Positions 5,702 to 49,107 of a stretch of DNA of 64,000 bases are shown here, piece after piece; within the stretch, counting starts at the first letter, position 1; every line of letters begins with the position of its first letter. The DNA is taken from NCBI GenBank assembly GCA_964019335.1, contig OZ025666.1, positions 124,001 through 188,000 of the forward strand, read 5' to 3'. The DNA is from Diplonema japonicum (Eukaryota > Protista > Euglenozoa: Diplonemea). The notes under the pieces are model-generated. The model saw only the letters and a program-made list of their open reading frames with translations. It was not told where the DNA came from and ran no database searches. A program made the translations under genes and the position numbers.

Positions 5702-6700
5702 ATGCATGCCCTAGGACTGCTATTGGCAGCAGTTTTTGCAGTGAACGAACCCTTGCAGGAAGGGTTATGGGAAGTGGTGTGTGGCGGCAAGGTGGATGCG
5801 ATACTGGCGTTTAGCAGTGCTGGGGATGGGTTCAAAAGCAGCAGCGGGACGGAGGCATGGAACGGTCTGAAGGGGATGATGGACACAAACGGGGCCAACA
5901 TGACGCTCATGAAAGACGGGCAAGAGGCCATTGACGCATGGTTTGAAACTTTTCCCAGTGTAATTGCAAGTGATTCCTGCACGCTGACACTTGGGAAAGT
6001 GAACTGCAGCGCGATGATACGAACTATAAACGACTCACTCGTTGCTACCGTCGCATTCAAGGACGAGCTCACGTTTACAATTACCTCTCCAACAGGGTTT
6101 CGAACCAATTTGTGGTTCGGTTTCTCAACTACACCAGAATCCCTTCAGGGGCGTGACATTATAGGAGTGTCGTTCCTTGACCCTGGGATCTTCATCCGAG
6201 ATGGCTGGGGTGCGGTTCAAGGCAATACATTAACCAGTGTGAGTGATGTTACTAACGGTGGATCCAATAGCATCACGCAAATAAACACCAGCGTCAGCAC
6301 TGAAATATCTTTCCAGCGAGGATTCGACACAGGTGATGCCCGTGACACCCCGTACCAAGACGGCGCAAAGTTAACATGGTTCCTCGGAACAGTCGACAGC
6401 GACAACTTCGTCACCATCATGGAATCCTCCTTTTTCAACATCACAATGATTGCATCTTGCCAAACGCTTCCTCCGCCTCCCTCCGAACCTTTTTTCTCTC
6501 TCACCATGATTCTTATCTTAACGGGCTCTTTTCTCGGGTTCATTTTGATATCACTCATAATTTTTTATCTCTGCATGACTTGCTCCAGGCCTCTTACTCA
6601 CTTTTCGGAATTTTCGCTGGGGGCTGGTGAAGTAGATTTCCAAGAAGAACAAAAGTTGGGACTCACCGCCCTTGAAGTGTCGAATTCCGTCACTATCTGA
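5702..6700 (+). CDS. Type I membrane protein with DOMON-like domain
   Basis: Signal peptide, WFGFS..GRDIIG..ISFQRGFDTGD DOMON-like motifs, C-terminal TM helix. Confidence 0.7.
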   Translation: MHALGLLLAAVFAVNEPLQEGLWEVVCGGKVDAILAFSSAGDGFKSSSGTEAWNGLKGMMDTNGANMTLMKDGQEAIDAWFETFPSVIASDSCTLTLGKVNCSAMIRTINDSLVATVAFKDELTFTITSPTGFRTNLWFGFSTTPESLQGRDIIGVSFLDPGIFIRDGWGAVQGNTLTSVSDVTNGGSNSITQINTSVSTEISFQRGFDTGDARDTPYQDGAKLTWFLGTVDSDNFVTIMESSFFNITMIASCQTLPPPPSEPFFSLTMILILTGSFLGFILISLIIFYLCMTCSRPLTHFSEFSLGAGEVDFQEEQKLGLTALEVSNSVTI

Positions 6701-6741
6701 TTATTGTTTAACGCCACCAAGCCACCAATTTGGTGGCAAGT

Positions 6742-6812
6742 GCGACCGTGGTCTAGTGGCATGATGGATCCCTCCCAAGGATTCGACCCGGGTTCGATTC
6801 CCGGCGGTCGCA
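6742..6812 (+). tRNA. tRNA-Gly(CCC)
   Basis: Acceptor GCGACCG/CGGTCGC+A, anticodon loop CT-CCC-AA, T arm CCGGG-TTCGATT-CCCGG, followed by a T run. Confidence 0.95.
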
Positions 6813-7418
6813 TATTTTATTTATTGTCATTTCCTTTGATCTCGGTGTTGCAATAAGTGTAAAACTTGAATTTACACTTAGCTTTTCAAGAATTTTTTCT
6901 TGACTTCATTTTATCTGAAAAAACACGCGATAAAAGAATGGTTTGAATTGCATTTTGGCGGAACTTTCGTGTGTTCTTCTCTTTTCTCCTGGGAAAAAAA
7001 GGAAGGAAAAAATATCATCGAGCCGTGTTGTAAAAATGTGTGTTGCTTGCTGTCTTCATTGACTTAGCGAGTGATTGGTTCCCTTGAATTTTCTCTCCAG
7101 CAGCGTTTGGAACATAAGTAGGTTCATAATATTCGATTTACTTACTATTTCCCCCCCTTTTTTCTTATCCTTCTCGAACACTGTCTTTCAGCAATCCCCT
7201 CTTGTCCGGACACATGTGAATGTACTTTTCATTTCCTTTTATTTTTGTAGAATTTTCTAATCTCTTCTTTTTTGGTTTAGTTTCTCTCGGGATGGAGACC
7301 GGGGTGGGTGGAATTATTCTTTTTTTTTTTTTCCCGCAAAATAAAAAAAAAAAACTCCAAGCACAAAAAGGGCCTTTGATTATTTGCCTTCTTCGACGTT
7401 ACACTCTTTACACAACCA

Positions 7419-7681
7419 ATGTCTGCAGCAGCTGGTGGTATGGTAGGAGGAGGGCTTGCAGGAGGACAGGCAGTGGCCGCGCCAGCAGCGCCAATTGGAA
7501 GGGTATTAGCTTTTTTTCTTGTAAAATAATATTGTTATCCAAACAGATACCTAAAAAGGTGAAGAGGTGCATCCAGAAGTCCTATGCAGACCTCAACAAC
7601 AACATTGCCAACATGGAACAGAAGAATATGAACCTAAAATCCGGCTACTCTTCTGCTCAGAGAGAATACGCGTCTTCTTAG
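7419..7681 (+). CDS. Small hypothetical protein (~72 aa), two exons (intron 7503-7546)
   Basis: ATG 7419, then a GT..AAACAG 44-nt phase-0 intron joins MSAAAGG..PIGR to IPKKVKRC..YASS*. Confidence 0.5.
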
Positions 7682-7919
7682 GGTCGGCCGAGTGAACCCT
7701 TCACTCCCTCTCCCTTTTCTTCGTTCCTCATTTCCCCTCCCACAAGTATCGATTGGATGTTGATGCCTTTCGCAATTACACGCGAAGCGTAAGTTGGTGA
7801 AGTGTCCCCCACCTTTTTTCTTCAAGTTTTCTATTTTTAATCTGCACTTTTTCCTATGAAACATCGAGACTTAATAAAAAGAAACTGAGAAGAGAATGAG
7901 AGAATCATGAACCTTTGAA

Positions 7920-7991
7920 GGTGGTCACAGCTAGTGGCAGCCCCAGCGACCCTCCATGGATCTGACCACCCGTTCCGACTCACCCAGATCA
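7920..7991 (+). ncRNA. H1: single-hairpin AGA-box H/ACA-like snoRNA, predicted LSU Psi2944 equivalent (yeast snR37 site)
   Basis: Stems GGTGGTC/GAC(T)CACC and GTGGCAG/CTG(A)CCAC. Pocket CAGCT + CGTTCC pairs with LSU GGAACG-UG-AGCUG; AGA (7986-7988) lies 15 nt from the pocket. Confidence 0.85.
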
Positions 7992-8022
7992 CACCAGTTA
8001 TTTTTCTTTCCTCAAGGAGAAA

Positions 8023-8123
8023 ATGATGAAAATATATTCTGTCAGTGCTGGCACCAGAGCAGAGCTGCAGAGGGGTAGCACCCTTTGTGACCATGAGCAC
8101 ATTTTTTAAATTATCGCTGCTGA
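8023..8123 (+). ncRNA. C1: box C/D snoRNA, guide to SSU helix 18 (UCUGGUGCCAGCA)
   Basis: Box C ATGATGA 8023-8029; antisense TGCTGGCACCAGA 8046-8058 before D' CAGA; box D CTGA 8120-8123. Confidence 0.85.
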
Positions 8124-8175
8124 AATAATGGAAAATTTTGAAATAAGAATTAGAAAAAAATTGAGATACTTTACA

Positions 8176-8245
8176 CCACGGGGTGCAATTCTGCTGGGCC
8201 GAACGACCTCATGTTCCTCATCAGCGGGAAACACCCCGGAGATGA
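8176..8245 (+). ncRNA. H2: single-hairpin AGA-box snoRNA, predicted LSU Psi960 equivalent (yeast snR8 site)
   Basis: Stem CGGGGTG/CACCCCG, upper stem GCTG/CAGC. Pocket (GCA)ATTCT + GGGAAAC pairs with GUUUCCC-UC-AGGAU; AGA at 8240-8242. Confidence 0.82.
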
Positions 8246-8272
8246 GGAGGAGGGGTTGTGAAGAAGGCGAGA

Positions 8273-8366
8273 ACAACGAGTGATGACCAACACGAGGCAT
8301 TTGTCTGAACACCTTTTTGCGACGATTATAAAAACGTATTCTACCTTAACTTATCGCTGACGTTGT
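8273..8366 (+). ncRNA. C2: box C/D snoRNA, predicted LSU Am2281 equivalent (snR13/U15 site)
   Basis: Terminal stem ACAACG/CGTTGT; C GTGATGA 8280; guide ACGAGGCATTTG 8292-8303 antisense to CAAAUGCCUCGU; D' CTGA 8305; D CTGA 8357. Confidence 0.9.
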
Positions 8367-8440
8367 GTTGCCGAAATGGGGTATTGCTTTTGGTGTTTTT
8401 TTTTTTTTTTTTTTTTGTTTTGTTTTTGAAAGATAGGCGA

Positions 8441-8543
8441 ATGACGAGACACAAACCATGACTCCAGACAGGTTGCGATGTGACAATCTCAGCCTCATGC
8501 TTGAAACCGATCGAGTCAAACAAGTGCAGGATCAACCACCTGA
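8441..8543 (+). ncRNA. C3: box C/D snoRNA, guide to SSU 5' end (predicted Um8)
   Basis: C ATGACGA (ATGATGA in the copies at 44579 and 46478); GCAGGATCAACCA 8526-8538 antisense to UGGUUGAUCCUGC; D CTGA 8540. Confidence 0.87.
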
Positions 8544-8603
8544 CTTTCCTTCCTTTCTATTTCCTGTGTTGCTCATAAGACCAATATACCCCACAAAGGC
8601 TAG

Positions 8604-8704
8604 CTGATGACAAACCATATTTCTATATTTCACCTCTGACGCTTTGAGGGGTCTGCCCGAAAGGGTGGGCTCAGTTTGAAAATACAAATTTTTCGTCTCA
8701 CTGA
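8604..8704 (+). ncRNA. C4: box C/D snoRNA, target uncertain
   Basis: C CTGATGA 8604; TATTTCACCT before D' CTGA 8636; internal GAAA-tetraloop hairpin; D CTGA 8701. Confidence 0.75.
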
Positions 8705-8748
8705 CAATGCCATTTCTACTCTGGCCTCATGGCACCCCTCTCTTCCCT

Positions 8749-8845
8749 GTGATGATAATGCACTCCGTTTATCTTTGTAGGTTGGGACAACTGAGCACCT
8801 TGTGTGTTGAAGATGCTGCATCAGGATTATTATCTAAACAACTGA
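8749..8845 (+). ncRNA. C5: box C/D snoRNA, predicted LSU Cm2337 equivalent (snR64/U74 site)
   Basis: C GTGATGA 8749; GTAGGTTGGGACA 8777-8789 antisense to UGUCCCnnnCUAC; D' CTGA 8791; D CTGA 8842. Confidence 0.82.
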
Positions 8846-8893
8846 GAAGGAGCAACAAGAGCGGAGGCCTTTTTGACCGACATGAACCTTGAA

Positions 8894-8965
8894 GGTGGTC
8901 ACAGCTAGTGGCAGCCCCAGCGACCCTCCATGGATCTGACCACCCGTTCCGACTCACCCAGATCA
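8894..8965 (+). ncRNA. H1 AGA-box snoRNA copy
   Basis: Same sequence as 7920-7991. Confidence 0.85.
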
Positions 8966-9029
8966 CACGTGTTCTATTTTTCTTTTGTGGAAATATATCT
9001 CAGTTTTTTTTTCTTTCCTCAAGGAGAAA

Positions 9030-9129
9030 ATGATGAAAATATATTCTGTCAGTGCTGGCACCAGAGCAGAGCTGCAGAGGGGTAGCACCCTTTGTGACCA
9101 TGAGCACATTTTTAATATTCCGCTGCTGA
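9030..9129 (+). ncRNA. C1 box C/D snoRNA copy
   Basis: Boxes and D' guide as in 8023-8123. Confidence 0.85.
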
Positions 9130-9166
9130 AATAAAAAAAAGAAAATTGAGATATTTTTTCAAGACA

Positions 9167-9236
9167 CCACGGGGTGCAATTCTGCTGGGCCGAACGACCT
9201 CATGTTCCTCATCAGCGGGAAACACCCCGGAGATGA
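9167..9236 (+). ncRNA. H2 AGA-box snoRNA copy
   Basis: Same sequence as 8176-8245. Confidence 0.82.
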
Positions 9237-9264
9237 GGAGGAGGGGTTGTGAAAGAAGGCGAGA

Positions 9265-9357
9265 ACAACGAGTGATGACCAACACGAGGCATTTGTCTGA
9301 ACACCTTTTGCGACGATTATAAAAACGTATTCTACCTTAACTTATCGCTGACGTTGT
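9265..9357 (+). ncRNA. C2 box C/D snoRNA copy
   Basis: Same as 8273-8366; similarity stops right after the terminal stem. Confidence 0.88.
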
Positions 9358-9435
9358 CCGGCACAGTTTATTTTTGTTTGGAGGGGATAAACACACACAA
9401 TACACTCCTAACCACAGGTGGAATGACAAAGAGGC

Positions 9436-10089
9436 ATGGAGCCTGGGTCACTCACTGTCATACCATGTAGCAATTTCTCGATGATTGCACCTGGAGTGTA
9501 CCGTAGCGGATACCCTAGCAAGAAAAACTTTATGTTTTTGAAAAGGCTTGGGGTGAGGTCGATCTGCTATCTCTGTCCGGAGGAGTACGCCCTGGTGAAC
9601 CAAGATTTTTACGCATCGAACGGGATCAAGATTCTGCAGTTCCCAATGGAGGGGAACAAGGAACCGTTTGTTAACATTCCTGAAGAGCAGGTTAACAGGG
9701 CACTCAGCGCCATCTGCGATACGAGCCATCATCCTATCCTCATACACTGCAACAAGGGGAAACACAGAACAGGAGCAGTTTGCGGGTGCCTACGGAGAAT
9801 CCAAGGGTGGTCCCTTGTGTCCATCATCGATGAATACAACAGGTTCGCTGGTGATAAAAGCAGATCCATGGACCAGCAGTTTGTAGAACTCTTCCGCCCT
9901 CAGATCACTCTAGACAAACGATACATGCCCGACTGGCTCTCTCTCACCGACATGAATCCCCTCTTTGCTGCCAAGGTTGTCGGCGAGGCAAACGAAGAAG
10001 AACCCAACCCCATCGGACCCCATGTCCAGTTCCTTGCCAAGCCCTACATTCCCCGCAAGATTGGGCAGGGCAAAAAAGAAGCTGATTAA
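9436..10089 (+). CDS. SIW14: Siw14/PFA-DSP family phosphatase
   Basis: NFSMIAPGVYRSGYP and the catalytic motif HCNKGKHRTG. Confidence 0.9.
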   Translation: MEPGSLTVIPCSNFSMIAPGVYRSGYPSKKNFMFLKRLGVRSICYLCPEEYALVNQDFYASNGIKILQFPMEGNKEPFVNIPEEQVNRALSAICDTSHHPILIHCNKGKHRTGAVCGCLRRIQGWSLVSIIDEYNRFAGDKSRSMDQQFVELFRPQITLDKRYMPDWLSLTDMNPLFAAKVVGEANEEEPNPIGPHVQFLAKPYIPRKIGQGKKEAD

Positions 10090-40887: not shown

Positions 40888-42360
40888 ATGGAAGCATATT
40901 CCCCCCTCCAGGATTGCATGGAATGCTACGTAATAACAGCAACAATGCCACACACCAGTCCAACTCATGGGGTGTAGCCCCCACCCCTGCAACTCCCCCC
41001 CCTGAATGGGGTCCTGGCGTCATCACTGTGACACGCGAATCGCACGAACCAGGACTAGGTATGACATAGTGTTGCGGGAATTCTATTTTTCTTCTTTTGA
41101 AACAATTGTTACAATTCCACAGGAATGACAATTGAGCACTTAGTGCTCATCTCTGTTCGACCCGAAAGCCCTGCAGGGAGAGCTGGCGTACAGGTTATGC
41201 TCGGCAGGAGGATCACCCATGTATGACCCCAGAAAGAAAAACACACTCCAACGCAACAGATAAACGACCAGCCGGTAAGAGACAATTTCGATATAGAAAG
41301 GCTCACACAAGGGCCGATCGCAAGGTTCCGGTTCAGCCCTCTGGTGTCAGGGACATCGGAGGAGCACATGGTCAACACAATCAACAAACTGAAGGAGCAG
41401 GGCGCCAACATGACGTTGCGGCGTCGGCACCGTGACGTGCCCCTTGGGATAGATCTCAGGGAGCCGGGGCTCACCTTAGAGACCATTGACGCCAAGAGCC
41501 CTGCAGCGGATGCAGGGTTGCAGCGTTTCATAGGCCACCAGCTGACACACGCGAACGGGAGGTACGTGACAACAACAACAGACGTTATGCTTGCATCGGA
41601 GGGGCTCACTACTGTTGAGCTTCGGTTCAAGCCCCATATCTGCGGTGTCACCGTAGTGCGGGCTACTGAGCGCACACCATGGGGCTTCTCGGTAGGGTCC
41701 CTCAACCTCGAGGTGATGGAAGTGTACCCCAACAGCCCTGGCGACCGTGCAGGCCTAGAGAACTGGATCAACCACAAGGTCACACACGTAAACGGAAAAC
41801 ACATAAAGTCCTCCCACGACCTGGTTGAAATCATGAAGTCACCTGCAAAAGAGCTGCAAATCCGACTCTCGCCGTGGTCCTCAGAAGAGGAGGCCGAGAT
41901 TCCTTCTGAAGGCCTCAGGCAAGAAGATGTTAAAGTGAACCTCCGTCCCGGCACAGGACTTGGCATGGCCTTGTCCACAATTGGGTTAATATTGGAAAAG
42001 GTGCAACCAGGTTCACCAGCAGACGAGGCGGCCTTGTTGCCAGCGTTCAAAGGATGGAAGTTATCCCACGTCAACGGGCAGGCTGTGAAGACAGTCGATG
42101 AAGTGGGTGAACTGGCATACTCCCCTGAGGCACCGCACGCATGGTTTCGCTTCCAGCAGCTCACTGCGGACACGGTTGTCTCTCCTGACACCATTGCCAG
42201 CGACAACATCAATGTCCAGAAGTACAGGGAATGGCTGAAGAGAAGGTCTTCTGACCGTGACAGAGCCAACTCCCCTCCCGCTTCCCACCCTGGGCTCATA
42301 CACCTCCCGAAGTACTCTTCTCCATTGTTCTTGTCGTCCACAGGACACAAGTTCGCTTAG
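40888..42360 (+). CDS. Protein with four PDZ-like repeats; introns 40930-40958, 41059-41122, 41221-41259
   Basis: Repeated G(M/I/F)..L..V.P.SPA..AG....ITH(V/I)NG; exons join in frame. The 5' exon is the least certain. Confidence 0.75.
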
Positions 42361-42871: not shown

Positions 42872-42964
42872 ACAACGAGTGATGACCAACACGAGGCATT
42901 TGTCTGAACAATTTTTGCGACGATTATAAAAACGTATTCTACCTTAACTTATCGCTGACGTTGT
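42872..42964 (+). ncRNA. C2 box C/D snoRNA copy
   Basis: Matches 8273-8366. Confidence 0.88.
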
Positions 42965-43331: not shown

Positions 43332-43428
43332 GTGATGATAATGCACTCCGTTTATCTTTGTAGGTTGGGACAACTGAGCACCTTGTGTGTTGAAGATGCT
43401 GCATCAGGATTATTATCTAAACAACTGA
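43332..43428 (+). ncRNA. C5 box C/D snoRNA copy
   Basis: Matches 8749-8845. Confidence 0.82.
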
Positions 43429-43476
43429 GAAGGAGCAACAAGAGCGGAGGCCTTTTTGACCGACATGAACCTTGAA

Positions 43477-43548
43477 GGTGGTCACAGCTAGTGGCAGCCC
43501 CAGCGACCCTCCATGGATCTGACCACCCGTTCCGACTCACCCAGATCA
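43477..43548 (+). ncRNA. H1 AGA-box snoRNA copy
   Basis: Matches 7920-7991. Confidence 0.85.
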
Positions 43549-43614
43549 CACTGTCAAGGTGTTTTCTCTTTTTTTTTTTTTGTAGAACATCCCAGCTTTT
43601 TTTTTTTGGAGAAA

Positions 43615-43713
43615 ATGATGAAAATATATTCTGTCAGTGCTGGCACCAGAGCAGAGCTGCGGAGGGGTAGCACCCTTTGTGACCATGAGCACATTTTAAT
43701 ATTCCGCTGCTGA
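43615..43713 (+). ncRNA. C1 box C/D snoRNA copy
   Basis: Boxes and guide intact. Confidence 0.85.
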
Positions 43714-43759
43714 AATAAAAAAGGAAAGAAATACGATTTAAGAAAAGAAGATGAGAAAA

Positions 43760-44151
43760 GTAGCCCAGGCAGTGATGAAAAGACAGGAGTGAGGAGCATG
43801 AGCGGGGAGGGAGGGGGCTGCGCAGAAGGAACCGTACACAGGAAGGGGTCCCTGTTTGGGGGCGGCCTTCCTCCGCAAGATCCTTTTGGGTAAAGTCCCT
43901 GAGAAAAGCGGCGGGCTGGGTTCGCGCTGCTTGCACCTCTCCGGGAGGCCATCCCTGCAAGAGGGTGCGGGTGTGGTTTCTGCACCTGCGCTGTGCGGGG
44001 TTCGCCCCTGCTGCAGCGGCACCTGGAAGGGCGGCAGCGTGGGGCCCGTCGTGAAGACAGTCATGCAGCCACTGGGACCCTTGTCCCGCAACCTCAAGAG
44101 GGCTTATCCTCCCTCCCCGTGCTCCCGCTCTTTGTCTGCTGAGCCTGCTAC
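43760..44151 (+). ncRNA. RNase MRP RNA (RNase P/MRP family) enclosed by box C/D termini
   Basis: P4 AAG(T)CCCT 43893-43900 with AGGGCTT 44099-44105 (bulged U); P1 CGGGGAGGGAGG 43803-43814 with CCTCCCTCCCCG 44108-44119; P2 GGCTGCG/TGCAGCC; P3 with internal loop 43825-43870; CR-IV-like ACAGTCAT; P19 GGGAC/GTCCC; box C 43772-43778; box D 44139-44142. Confidence 0.85.
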
Positions 44152-44191
44152 ATCTTTTTTTTTTTGGTTTTTCCTGGCTTTAAAAAAAAAA

Positions 44192-44291
44192 ATGATGAAA
44201 ATATATTCTGTCAGTGCTGGCACCAGAGCAGAGCTGCGGAGGGGTAGCACCCTTTGTGACCATGAGCACATTTTTAATATTCCGCTGCTGA
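44192..44291 (+). ncRNA. C1 box C/D snoRNA copy
   Basis: Boxes and guide intact. Confidence 0.85.
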
Positions 44292-44329
44292 AATAATAAA
44301 AAAGAAAATTGAGATATTTTTTCAAGACA

Positions 44330-44399
44330 CCACGGGGTGCAATTCTGCTGGGCCGAACGACCTCATGTTCCTCATCAGCGGGAAACACCCCGGAGATGG
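44330..44399 (+). ncRNA. H2 AGA-box snoRNA copy
   Basis: Matches 8176-8245. Confidence 0.82.
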
Positions 44400-44425
44400 G
44401 AGGAGGGGTTGTGAAGAAGGCGAGA

Positions 44426-44519
44426 ACAACGAGTGATGACCAACACGAGGCATTTGTCTGAACACCTTTTTGCGACGATTATAAAAACGTATTCTACCTT
44501 AACTTATCGCTGACGTTGT
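44426..44519 (+). ncRNA. C2 box C/D snoRNA copy
   Basis: Matches 8273-8366. Confidence 0.88.
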
Positions 44520-45039: not shown

Positions 45040-46140
45040 AAATGAACTAAACCAATGACCACTCCAGGGAGCGCAGGGGGCAGGAACATGACAGAGGAGC
45101 CCAAGACATTGAAAGACTGCCGAGTACGATGCTAGCATTCAAGCACCTTAGCTGATCAGTGATATCATCGGGTGCGCTACTGCTTTTGGTGACGAGACAT
45201 TCGCCCACAGTGTCGGCTAGAGCAATGCAAGTAGTGTTCAGCACATAAGAGTTTAAGATATGATCACATTGCTGCACCCATAGCAGCACAGTGTATCTTG
45301 AAATACCTTTGCAAACCATGCGGTAGGTGTTTTCGCACCTCATGTACAGATATTTTTGTTTTTTATAGTATTACTTCCCTCCGTTACTTTGTTATACATC
45401 ACCACAGGCCAAGGCAGGATGTATAAGACCCAGCCAGTCAGCGCTGGTGGGTTCCTCCTGGCAGGGCATTCCCCTACCCAGATGGGTAGGGGTGTACACG
45501 GTTCGCCTTCCAAGGTATTGAGCCAAAGAGTTAGTTTGCAAGTGTCGTACTTGACAAGCGGTCAGTACACGACAGCGGGGGCAGCGGTTCACTTCTTCCA
45601 GGTAGCTGAGGAAGGGAACAGTGAGAAGAAGCGGTTGATCGTGTTGGTGGACAAGGCCACCTTTTCGGCCGACCTCGAGACCGCGATGAACAGGTGCGTC
45701 CTGATATCCAACATCAACGAGATATGGGTGAACAGGGAGCACATCCGTCCCCTTTTGGGCCCTATGACTGTTTTCGACACCTTTATACAAGATCTCTCCA
45801 TCGTTGACTTCATCCGTGTTATCCCATGTACCTTCCACCCTAGCGACCCTGCTAACCTTGTCTGCATGTACGAGTTAGAGGAGGGACAGCTCATATCGCG
45901 TAAGGCGAACTGTCGACCAGCGGCTCTCATGAAGGATGAAGGGATATTCACGAAGTCTGAGCATGATGATGGCCAGAACAGCCAGTTGGAAATCAAACGG
46001 CTTCAAGATATGCTGCAAAGGCAAACTCTTGAGCTTTTTGATGCAAGAACGCAGATCGAGCAACTACGTCACAGTTTGTCTCTAGCGGAGACAAGGAGTG
46101 CATATGCATACGGGGTGATGGAGACACACGGGGGGAACGC
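45040..46140 (+). pseudogene. Deletion-collapsed duplicate of ~47.1-51.5 kb (fragments of the dynamitin-like and SPAG6-like genes, then a 3'-truncated copy of the 50765 gene; ORF 45419-46228)
   Basis: Colinear fragments match ~47144-47202, ~49630-49690, ~49798-49846, ~50413-50460 and ~50670-51518. Confidence 0.85.
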
Positions 46141-46329
46141 GTTCTACCTTAAATTATCGGTGATGCTGTGTTGTTGGGTTGGGTTAGGTTGTGTGTTACA
46201 CTCCTCTTTTTGGGCCTCTTCCCTGTGATGGTGTGTGTTGAGGACACTGCATCATGATTATTATCCAGAAAAAAGAAGAAGAAAAAAAGAGAAGAGAGAA
46301 CAAACAAGCGTCCGACATAAACCTTTAAA

Positions 46330-47155: not shown

Positions 47156-48049
47156 ATGACAGAGGAGGCTAAGACACTGAAGGATCTGCCGGGGTACGAT
47201 GCCTGTGGGCAGCATGTGTTCGAGTTTGAAGGTGAACCGTGGGTGGAGCCCGAGAAGGAAAAGGAAGTACATGTCGAGGAAGTAATAACAGAAGAGAGCT
47301 TGAAGCCAGAGGAGGCCAGCGCAGTATTCGAAGGCATGAAAGGTGTTGAGGAAAGGTGTGGTGTAGGGATGCTTAAAGAGCTGCTGGGACCTGACGAGAT
47401 GTCACTGGAAGAGATGCAGCACGAGATCACGGTGTTGCAAAACGAAGTGCTGTCGATGCTCGAGAAGGAGCAGCCTGTTGTGCAAGAGACGGTGGCTGAC
47501 AACAAGATGCTGCAGCAGAAAATCTCGGAGTTGAAAGCAACGGTTGGAAGCGAGGGCAAACCTTCTCAGACCCTCGTGAACATTGTGTCTAAGCTGGAGC
47601 AAAGAACAGCACTGCTACAAGAGCCAACGTTGAGGATGACGCTGGAGAGGGTGAGGAAGGCGACGGCTGCCATGGACGAAGTGATCAAGTTGGGCAAGAC
47701 TACCGACTTGCAGGCCTCTGTAGGCAACGGTGAGGAACTGAACAAGCTGCTTGAGGAGCTTCGTTCCAGAGACTCCGCTAGCGATCCCTTGCAGAACATT
47801 ATAGAACGTCTCGCAACGCTGCGCCCCATCCATGACGCCTGCGATGCGACCACCTCCCTCGTCCGCGAGGCGACTGCCCTGCAAGACGCTACCGATACAT
47901 CTCTCCAACAGTCCTTAGGGACGCTGCTGGCCCTCGAGGAGGACCTCCCCAAGCTCTCTAATCAGATATCTGCCAACACCCTTGCTATCCAAGCAAGAGC
48001 CGATCGATTGTCCAAGAACCTCAAACTCCTTGAAGACAGCAAGAAATAG
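47156..48049 (+). CDS. DCTN2: Dynamitin (dynactin p50)-like protein
   Basis: N-terminal DLPGYD..VFE and L.PEEA..F; C-terminal L.NIIERLATLRPIH; coiled coil. Confidence 0.65.
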   Translation: MTEEAKTLKDLPGYDACGQHVFEFEGEPWVEPEKEKEVHVEEVITEESLKPEEASAVFEGMKGVEERCGVGMLKELLGPDEMSLEEMQHEITVLQNEVLSMLEKEQPVVQETVADNKMLQQKISELKATVGSEGKPSQTLVNIVSKLEQRTALLQEPTLRMTLERVRKATAAMDEVIKLGKTTDLQASVGNGEELNKLLEELRSRDSASDPLQNIIERLATLRPIHDACDATTSLVREATALQDATDTSLQQSLGTLLALEEDLPKLSNQISANTLAIQARADRLSKNLKLLEDSKK

Positions 48050-48108: not shown

Positions 48109-49107
48109 ATGGGGTACAACTACGAGGATGCCATTGCACGGGACACTTCGGTCGAAGTGCAGGAGGGTGAGTGGGGCAAAGGTGTGCATGCGAAGAAAGA
48201 GGGGATAGAAAAGGGCGATGTGTTGTGGAAGGAAGCCCCCATGTTTGTTGGGAAGTGTAAGACCCTTGGGGAGACGTGCGGGTTCTGCTTCAAGCTAACA
48301 GGGAAGTACGAAGGAAAGACCCCTCTCCCTGCCCTGCCACCAGGATGCACCAAGGAGGCATTCGGCACGTCCAGTGAACTAGGGACACCAGTTCAGTGTG
48401 AGCATGGGTGCGAGTGGTACTGCAGCGAGGTATGCAGGCAGGCTGCTTGGTCAAGATATCACAAGGTGGTTTGTGGGGAGAAGTACAAGGATCTTTTGCA
48501 GCATTTAACCGAGAAGGAGAAAGTTGGGAACCAGCGGGTAGTGTCCTTGAAGATGCTATGTGCGTCGAAAGTGTGCAGCGAGGAGGTTGTGAGGGCACAC
48601 CTGGACAGGCTAGTGGAGCTTCCTGAGGGTTCTGATGACAGTGTACGAACGGAGTATGATGAAGATATTTTCGCACGATTCACAGCGTGCACGGAGGGCA
48701 ACTGGGAGGCTGAGCAGTACTTTAAAATGCTGAGCAAGATGAAGGCCAACGCTGTGGAGCTTGACTTGGGCTTGAGGCTGGACGAAGAAGACAAACTAGA
48801 GCCCGACACAGCTCCCGGAGCACGACGTGCCACTGGCATCTTCGCTCTGCAGGCCTTCGTGAACCACTCCTGCAGCCCCAACGGGCATCGCGTCTTCCAC
48901 AACGGCACCCTCCACTTCGTGGCGGTGAAGGATATTGCTCATTCCGCGCAGGTCGTGATGGCTTACGTGAACCCCTCCAACACTATAAAGGAACGCCAAG
49001 CCAAGCTCAGATCCCACTGGCACATCGCATGCACTTGCGAACGCTGTACAGCTGACACTTTAAAACTGATCCTCTTCAGGCAGCTACTCGGTAACCTGAA
49101 AAAGTAG
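48109..49107 (+). CDS. SET and MYND domain (SMYD-like) methyltransferase
   Basis: GKGVHA, CGFC, YCSEVC..AW..YHK..C, FVNHSCSPN, AY, CTCERC. Confidence 0.9.
   Translation: MGYNYEDAIARDTSVEVQEGEWGKGVHAKKEGIEKGDVLWKEAPMFVGKCKTLGETCGFCFKLTGKYEGKTPLPALPPGCTKEAFGTSSELGTPVQCEHGCEWYCSEVCRQAAWSRYHKVVCGEKYKDLLQHLTEKEKVGNQRVVSLKMLCASKVCSEEVVRAHLDRLVELPEGSDDSVRTEYDEDIFARFTACTEGNWEAEQYFKMLSKMKANAVELDLGLRLDEEDKLEPDTAPGARRATGIFALQAFVNHSCSPNGHRVFHNGTLHFVAVKDIAHSAQVVMAYVNPSNTIKERQAKLRSHWHIACTCERCTADTLKLILFRQLLGNLKK

Follow-up and report, generated by a model that had tools for sequence, protein, structure and literature searches.

A putative RNase MRP RNA with a terminal box C/D kink-turn in a snoRNA array of the diplonemid Diplonema japonicum

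Introduction

In most eukaryotes Pol III transcribes RNase MRP RNA from a gene of its own, and P1 marks the two ends of the RNA. Divergent MRP RNAs have reportedly been recognised in Euglena, Diplonema and kinetoplastids, and P/MRP proteins are said not to have been found in kinetoplastids. Euglenozoans lack conventional small-RNA promoters and have the gene in snoRNA clusters, which raises the question of how their MRP RNA is produced.

The MRP RNA gene of T. brucei is located inside a snoRNA cluster (Barth et al. 2008, Eukaryot Cell 7:86, as related in passages of PMC6411936, PMC3273796 and PMC3091756) and is present in two copies about 10 kb apart on chromosome 10 (supplement of PMC3091756). 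The passages of PMC6411936, PMC3273796 and PMC3091756 that deal with this RNA make no mention of terminal C/D boxes. Euglenozoan MRP RNAs are also the subject of Alm Rosenblad, Lopez and Samuelsson 2021 (RNA Biol 18:139). Telomerase RNA offers another point of reference. In trypanosomes it uses the biogenesis pathway of C/D snoRNAs, and Nop58 and Snu13 bind to it (Gupta et al. 2013; excerpts of PMC4993307), and in vertebrates it has an H/ACA domain for stability, processing and localisation (the same excerpts of PMC4993307).

The locus described here resembles that of T. brucei in being a euglenozoan MRP gene that lies in a snoRNA cluster, has no Pol III unit of its own and is present in two copies on one chromosome or contig. 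It differs in that it belongs to a diplonemid and not to a kinetoplastid, and in length, since the T. brucei gene annotated at 1729478-1729998 of chromosome 10 has 521 nt, compared with 392 nt here. The placement of an MRP RNA within a snoRNA cluster is already known from T. brucei. The part that may be new is a terminal C/D cap; no report of one on MRP RNA was found in the literature searched, which did not take in the full texts of the 2008 and 2021 papers.

Identification of the MRP RNA

The window analysed is a stretch of 64,000 nt of D. japonicum DNA (contig OZ025666.1, positions 124,001 to 188,000). Within it, positions 43760-44151 (+ strand) form a GC-rich block of 392 nt, and the array of short repeats around it is rich in AT. 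A preliminary description, made from the letters alone, had taken this block for an MRP-like RNA, and the covariance models bear this out. RF00030 (RNase_MRP) matches 43802-44119 (+) over its full length (model positions 1-266) with 38.1 bits and an E-value of 3e-9 in a search of the window. Over the whole 62.5-Mb genome the E-value is 5e-8, and the significant matches are this locus and an identical twin, with one further match that is insignificant. RF00030 wins the clan competition at the locus, and RF00009 (RNaseP_nuc) has no match at E <= 1 in the whole 62.5-Mb genome. A separate nuclear RNase P RNA was not detected in the genome by the RF00009 search.

The score of 38.1 bits does not reach the gathering score of RF00030 (50 bits), and at Rfam gathering thresholds the window contains three tRNAs only; the match is therefore reported by E-value. 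The posterior probabilities of the RF00030 alignment are mostly 0.8-1 in P1, P2, P3, CR-IV and P19. The alignment is also confident in CR-I/P4 and CR-V/P4, and it fails in the specificity domain alone. The score lies under the cut-off because this long, GC-rich domain is left unaligned by the model.

All elements of the catalytic domain are present (Table 1). P1, P2, P3 with its internal loop, CR-IV and P19 follow one another in canonical order, and the MFE fold agrees with the alignment for P1, P2 and P19. The P4 pseudoknot can be read directly in the sequence, AAAGUCCCU being complementary to AGAGGGCUUA with U43896 bulged, so that CR-I (GAAAGUCCC) and CR-V (GGGCUUA) occur together with a bulged U. 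A GARAR P8 loop was sought as well; GAGAA is found at 43901-43905, immediately 3' of P4 and outside any predicted hairpin loop. The specificity domain, for which one UUCG loop had been proposed, has two. The whole block folds with -210.8 kcal/mol (MFE), which corresponds to z = -4.98 against dinucleotide shuffles. The sequence features of the preliminary description (P1 and its extension, P2, P3, P4, CR-IV, P19, the boxes and the closing stem) were all recovered where it had placed them.

On these grounds the block is almost certainly an RNase MRP RNA, as far as sequence and predicted structure can tell. A protein-coding reading was rejected, as no ORF of at least 150 aa overlaps the block. 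Two pattern scans of metagenomes with the CR-IV and CR-V motifs gave 0 matches in the first case and 5 chance matches in the second, none of these with Rfam support.

Table 1. Predicted features of the MRP RNA block and its snoRNA neighbours (window coordinates)
Feature	Position	Strand	Basis or remarks
Upstream C/D snoRNA (box C AUGAUGA, box D CUGA)	43613-43714	+	Repeat family D2; 45 nt before the putative capped MRP RNA
Terminal (C/D stem I) helix, 5' strand	43760-43770	+	GUAGC, CC bulge, AGGC; pairs with 44143-44151 in the MFE fold
Kink-turn bulge A-G-U	43771-43773	+	Sequence
Box C GUGAUGA	43772-43778	+	One nt from the stem; register as in genuine snoRNAs of the array
P1-extension stalk, 16-17 bp	43781-43802 / 44120-44137	+	MFE pair table
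P1 base pair	G43802-U44120	+	MFE pair table
P1	43803-43814 / 44108-44119	+	12 Watson-Crick bp; RF00030 alignment, MFE pair table
P2	43816-43821 (GGCUGC) / 44065-44070 (GCAGCC)	+	Rfam alignment and MFE agree
P3 hairpin with internal loop	about 43823-43889	+	Rfam alignment, high posterior probabilities
CR-I / P4 5' strand AAAGUCCCU	43892-43900	+	Matches model consensus GAAAGUCCCC; U43896 bulged
Divergent GC-rich specificity domain	43901-44056	+	Several hairpins in the MFE fold, two UUCG loops; unaligned by Rfam
CR-IV ACAGUCAUGCAG	44057-44068	+	Rfam alignment, posterior probability near 1
P19 hairpin	about 44073-44088	+	Rfam alignment, MFE fold
CR-V / P4 3' strand AGAGGGCUUA	44097-44106	+	Rfam alignment
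Box D CUGA	44139-44142	+	Stem starts right after its A
Terminal helix, 3' strand GCCU-GCUAC	44143-44151	+	MFE fold, motif scan
Downstream copy of the upstream-flanking C/D snoRNA	44190-44292	+	Repeat family D2; 38 nt after the putative capped MRP RNA
H/ACA-like (AGA-box type) snoRNA	44332-44399	+	RF01550, trypanosomatid TB8Cs3H1: weak, 22.2 bits, E 0.03, below gathering

Terminal box C/D motif and stalk

The ends of the block carry the box consensus of C/D RNAs, with box C (RUGAUGA) at the 5' side and box D (CUGA) at the 3' side. The terminal stem has 9 bp, of which CAGGC/GCCUG (43766-70 / 44143-47) is perfect and abuts the kink-turn, and GUAG/CUAC follows. Between the boxes lie a tandem G.A/A.G (43774-75 with 44142-41), a U.U pair (43776/44140) and a G-C pair (43777/44139). 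The register of stem, bulge, G.A/A.G, U.U and G-C is that of the kink-turn of box C/D RNAs, and the stem II U.U and G-C pairs are required for the recruitment of Nop58 in C/D assembly.

The kink-turn is joined to P1 by a stalk consisting of an 11-bp segment (43781-91 / 44126-37, with U44131 bulged), a 1-nt bulge and a 5-bp segment (43793-97 / 44121-25). A 4-nt bulge, AUGA (43798-43801), separates the stalk from the G-U pair at the base of P1. P1 had been given 12 perfect base pairs and an extension of about 17 bp, which the MFE pair table reproduces.

Both strands of the window were scanned for pairs of boxes C and D that lie 50-600 nt from each other and are closed by a 5-bp stem in the kink-turn register. 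The strict geometry was found in four copies of one genuine snoRNA (box spacing about 77), in the MRP pair (spacing 367) and in one minus-strand match. Markov-simulated sequence yields 0.38 chance matches per 64 kb when the spacing is free, and 0.03 when it is restricted to 300-450 and the register must be exact; this null takes in neither the bracketing of P1 nor the continuous helix that joins the motif to P1. The claim that box C, box D and the closing stem adopt kink-turn geometry thus withstands a test of exact register, and the terminal C/D kink-turn is very likely a real, non-random feature of this RNA.

When the MRP core is removed, the two halves of the wrapper pair as a plain hairpin that has no single-stranded guide in the pair table. 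Features of a methylation guide are absent from the block: the sequence that adjoins box D is base-paired in the stalk, and no internal UGAUGA occurs. A guide-less hairpin of this kind suggests that the wrapper is a cap, that is, a module for biogenesis and stability, and neither a present nor a former methylation guide. If the capped MRP RNA is a C/D RNA, it belongs to the non-guide type, like U3 or trypanosome telomerase RNA.

Genomic context and the second copy

The MRP gene lies between two copies of one C/D snoRNA on the coding strand, in agreement with the location in a snoRNA array that had been proposed for it. The long ORFs around the block are all on the + strand, as is the MRP gene, and the nearest tRNA is 17 kb off. 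A T12 run (44153-44164) begins 2 nt past the terminal stem, where it might serve to terminate Pol III. Every unit of the array is flanked by T and A runs, so the T12 run is not specific to the MRP gene. The gene does not look like a stand-alone transcription unit that ends at P1; it is a same-strand member of the snoRNA array.

A second copy of the gene, 100% identical, is located 53.7 kb upstream on the same contig (contig positions 114008-114399). The block had been called single-copy, which holds within the window and does not hold for the genome. The identity between the two copies covers window positions 43609-44162, and so takes in the upstream snoRNA, the spacer and the whole MRP RNA with a further 11 nt; from 44163 the sequences diverge completely. 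The second copy is a recent duplication or conversion. As the identity spans the spacer too, it does not inform on the bounds of the functional unit.

One C/D snoRNA (stem CAACG/CGTTG, box spacing about 77) occurs at 8280-8357, 9272-9348, 42879-42955 and 44433-44510. These positions fall in two separate arrays of the window, and the arrays therefore share units. A TTG-start ORF (45356-46228, 290 aa) that lies inside the snoRNA array has no Pfam match and is probably spurious.

Two ORFs on either side of the array have relatives in other diplonemids. The SET-MYND ORF 48109-49107 has its best matches in Rhynchopus euleeides (51%), Lacrimia lanifica (46%), two ENA assemblies and Diplonema papillatum DIPPA_29620 (37%), and the PDZ ORF 41344-42360 has its best match in D. 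papillatum DIPPA_29618. DIPPA_29618 and DIPPA_29620, the orthologues of the two flanking genes, are both located on one 162-kb contig of D. papillatum, and synteny across the snoRNA array is probably conserved in this species. These matches place the locus among the diplonemids, which narrows the euglenozoan affinity assumed in the preliminary description. A trypanosomatid, at first suggested by the weak TB8Cs3H1 match and by the intron-poor ORFs on a single strand, was rejected on the same grounds; beta-tubulin was too conserved to discriminate. A third ORF, 47156-48049, has a dynamitin domain (Pfam 40.5 bits) and no homologue at E <= 0.001 among 5.8 billion proteins in a word-indexed search. 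Its sequence is either very fast-evolving or lineage-restricted.

Expression and sequence variation

Public runs in the form of assembled contigs, none of them recorded as RNA, were aligned to 43400-44500; the summed contig depth that results is a weak measure. In three runs of the same organism it amounts, over the MRP block, to 3044 (706 million letters), 62 (61 million) and 139 (53 million), where DNA of a 62.5-Mb genome is expected at about 1-11x. As these depths are far over the DNA level, the runs appear to be RNA-derived and the MRP RNA appears to be expressed. In the deepest run the bodies of the snoRNAs reach 25,000-77,000, compared with about 900 in one spacer, and the MRP RNA is probably expressed at a level under that of the snoRNAs. 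Contigs 43693-44105 and 44137-44211 bridge the spacers on both sides of the block, which is compatible with a precursor, with the proviso that contig ends follow repeats.

In the RNA-like run X3, the bins 44103-44176 over the 3' wrapper have depths of 6,200-9,700, compared with 3,044 over the core. This excess could reflect abundant 3'-terminal fragments, or contigs that belong elsewhere.

A fourth run comes from a relative that is about 98% identical and is probably DNA (about 4x). Its 5' wrapper differs at one site, 43790, where U is replaced by C; the U-G pair formed with 44127 thereby becomes C-G, which strengthens the stalk. Over the 5' half, which is the part covered in this relative, box C and the 5' stem are unchanged.

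Protein machinery

Genes for P/MRP and C/D proteins were sought by six-frame Pfam searches of the genome. Three P/MRP families exceed the Pfam cut-offs, namely Pop4/Rpp29 (32.1 bits), Pop5/Rpp14 (52.5) and Rpp30 (69.1). POP1_N and POPLD were not detected in the six-frame search of the genome, in which the controls for these families were also silent. A PRORP is encoded (50.5 bits joined) and, together with the failure to detect a P RNA, makes it plausible that the Pop proteins serve MRP. The genome also encodes fibrillarin, Nop-domain proteins (Nop56/58) and many L7Ae-family genes. Judging from these sequence matches, both protein sets that a hybrid C/D-MRP particle would need appear to be encoded.

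The fibrillarin match (C100:40444-41239) consists of three consecutive pieces with a stop between, which suggests short introns or frame changes. Pop proteins are reported for Euglena, and none is said to be known from kinetoplastids. With Pop4, Pop5 and Rpp30, D. japonicum is unlike the kinetoplastids as reported, and its P/MRP protein set seems intermediate between the reports for the two groups.

Proposed biogenesis and significance

The explanation we favour is that the locus is a diplonemid MRP RNA gene whose RNA is derived from the array, capped and stabilised by a terminal C/D complex, and that the cap is retained; this combination as a whole appears rather probable. Its parts can be graded separately. 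The motif probably functions in biogenesis, and the C/D cap seems somewhat more apt to stay on the mature RNP than to be lost. The array would be transcribed as a single precursor, in which the kink-turn would be bound by Snu13, and Nop58, Nop56 and fibrillarin would join afterwards. Trimming by exonucleases would stop at the protein cap and leave both ends a few nt outside the stem. The cap may stabilise the RNA and direct it to the nucleolus, where the catalytic core, joined to subunits of the Pop4, Pop5 and Rpp30 type, would cleave pre-rRNA. The long helical stalk may hold the C/D proteins off the active site. The preliminary description had arrived at a hybrid C/D-MRP particle, of which the MRP identity, the location in a snoRNA array and the non-random kink-turn stand, and the particle itself has the more limited likelihood given above.

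A broader version would make the mature particle a permanent chimera of MRP and C/D snoRNP on a prolonged P1, of a design common to diplonemids and perhaps to kinetoplastids. This is a tentative idea and somewhat doubtful at present. If true, it would explain how kinetoplastids obtain their 'enigmatic' MRP RNA in stable form from Pol II polycistrons. It would also make the MRP RNA the third catalytic RNP with a snoRNP module, after the H/ACA and C/D telomerase RNAs, and the first ribozyme of the P/MRP family with such a module. More generally, the terminal C/D kink-turn offers a testable answer to the formation of MRP ends, in which a snoRNP cap defines them. A C/D cap would give the P/MRP family a new protein module, which bears on the proteins of kinetoplastid MRP.

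Alternative explanations

The RNA might be the nuclear RNase P RNA, or a dual P/MRP RNA, given that a separate RNase P RNA was not found in a genome that yet encodes Pop4, Pop5 and Rpp30. This appears extremely improbable, as RF00030 wins the clan and RF00009 is silent genome-wide at E <= 1, the P4 strands (AAAGUCCC and GGGCUUA) are of the MRP type, and the PRORP gene could supply the RNase P activity; identity with RNase P RNA was rejected once the RF00009 search of the genome had given nothing. With the MRP identity accepted, the boxes and the stem could still be a functionless product of chance or a relic, for instance of an MRP gene that landed in an old snoRNA gene, and the MRP block does resemble an insertion that duplicated the flanking snoRNA. 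This too is very unlikely. The chance expectation of 0.03 per 64 kb is reached before P1 bracketing and a continuous 16-bp helix are demanded, and without the core the two halves form a perfect hairpin that has no guide region, unlike a former guide snoRNA.

Two further explanations grant the wrapper a function and dispute what becomes of it or what binds it. The C/D complex may act transiently, setting the cut site in the precursor, with the stalk then removed and the mature ends lying at P1. The evidence from motif and context is equal for this and for the retained cap, and the AUGA bulge (43798-43801) with the G-U pair at the base of P1 might make the RNA easy to cut there. The protecting complex normally stays in place after C/D-dependent trimming, however, and we know of no second processing step that removes a C/D-protected stalk. 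Moreover, in X3 the depth over the 3' wrapper is not below that over the core, although summed contig depths measure this weakly. A transient wrapper is unlikely on this evidence. Alternatively, the kink-turn may be the site of an L7Ae-family P/MRP subunit (Rpp38/Pop3-like), with the RNA ending in another way, e.g. at a Pol III stop at 44153-44164. In archaea, L7Ae recognises kink-turns of the RNase P RNA (excerpts of PMC4245976), many L7Ae-family genes are present in the genome, and the T12 run follows the stem. On the other side, the full box C/D consensus is present, including the stem II U.U and G-C, and the motif is placed, as in a snoRNA, at the termini of the RNA rather than in P12 or P16. 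T runs are general to the spacers of the array, and no tRNA-type or other promoter element is found close upstream. We regard this second possibility as quite improbable, and retain the C/D cap as the preferred reading.

Comparison with known systems

The capped MRP RNA is like trypanosome telomerase RNA in being a large non-guide euglenozoan RNA with a C/D domain, and here the use of the C/D pathway is a proposal. The two differ at the 5' end, which is trans-spliced in trypanosome telomerase RNA, whereas the capped MRP RNA is predicted to begin and end in the C/D stem. Vertebrate telomerase RNA is similar in that a module of the snoRNA type is fused to the RNA of a catalytic RNP, but that module is H/ACA and restricted to the 3' end, and the MRP wrapper is C/D and involves both termini.

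Within the P/MRP family itself, kink-turns bound by L7Ae-family proteins are represented by archaeal RNase P RNA with L7Ae and by human Rpp38 (excerpts of PMC4245976). The archaeal kink-turns are found inside the RNA, in P12 and P16. They have no box C/D consensus, and neither Nop56/58 nor fibrillarin is recruited to them.

U3, U8 and U13 are a further likely analogue. They would share with the capped MRP RNA the character of a long RNA of the C/D class that takes part in pre-rRNA processing instead of methylation and has a terminal C/D element for stability. U3, U8 and U13 act by base pairing and are not ribozymes, and none of them has a P/MRP catalytic core.
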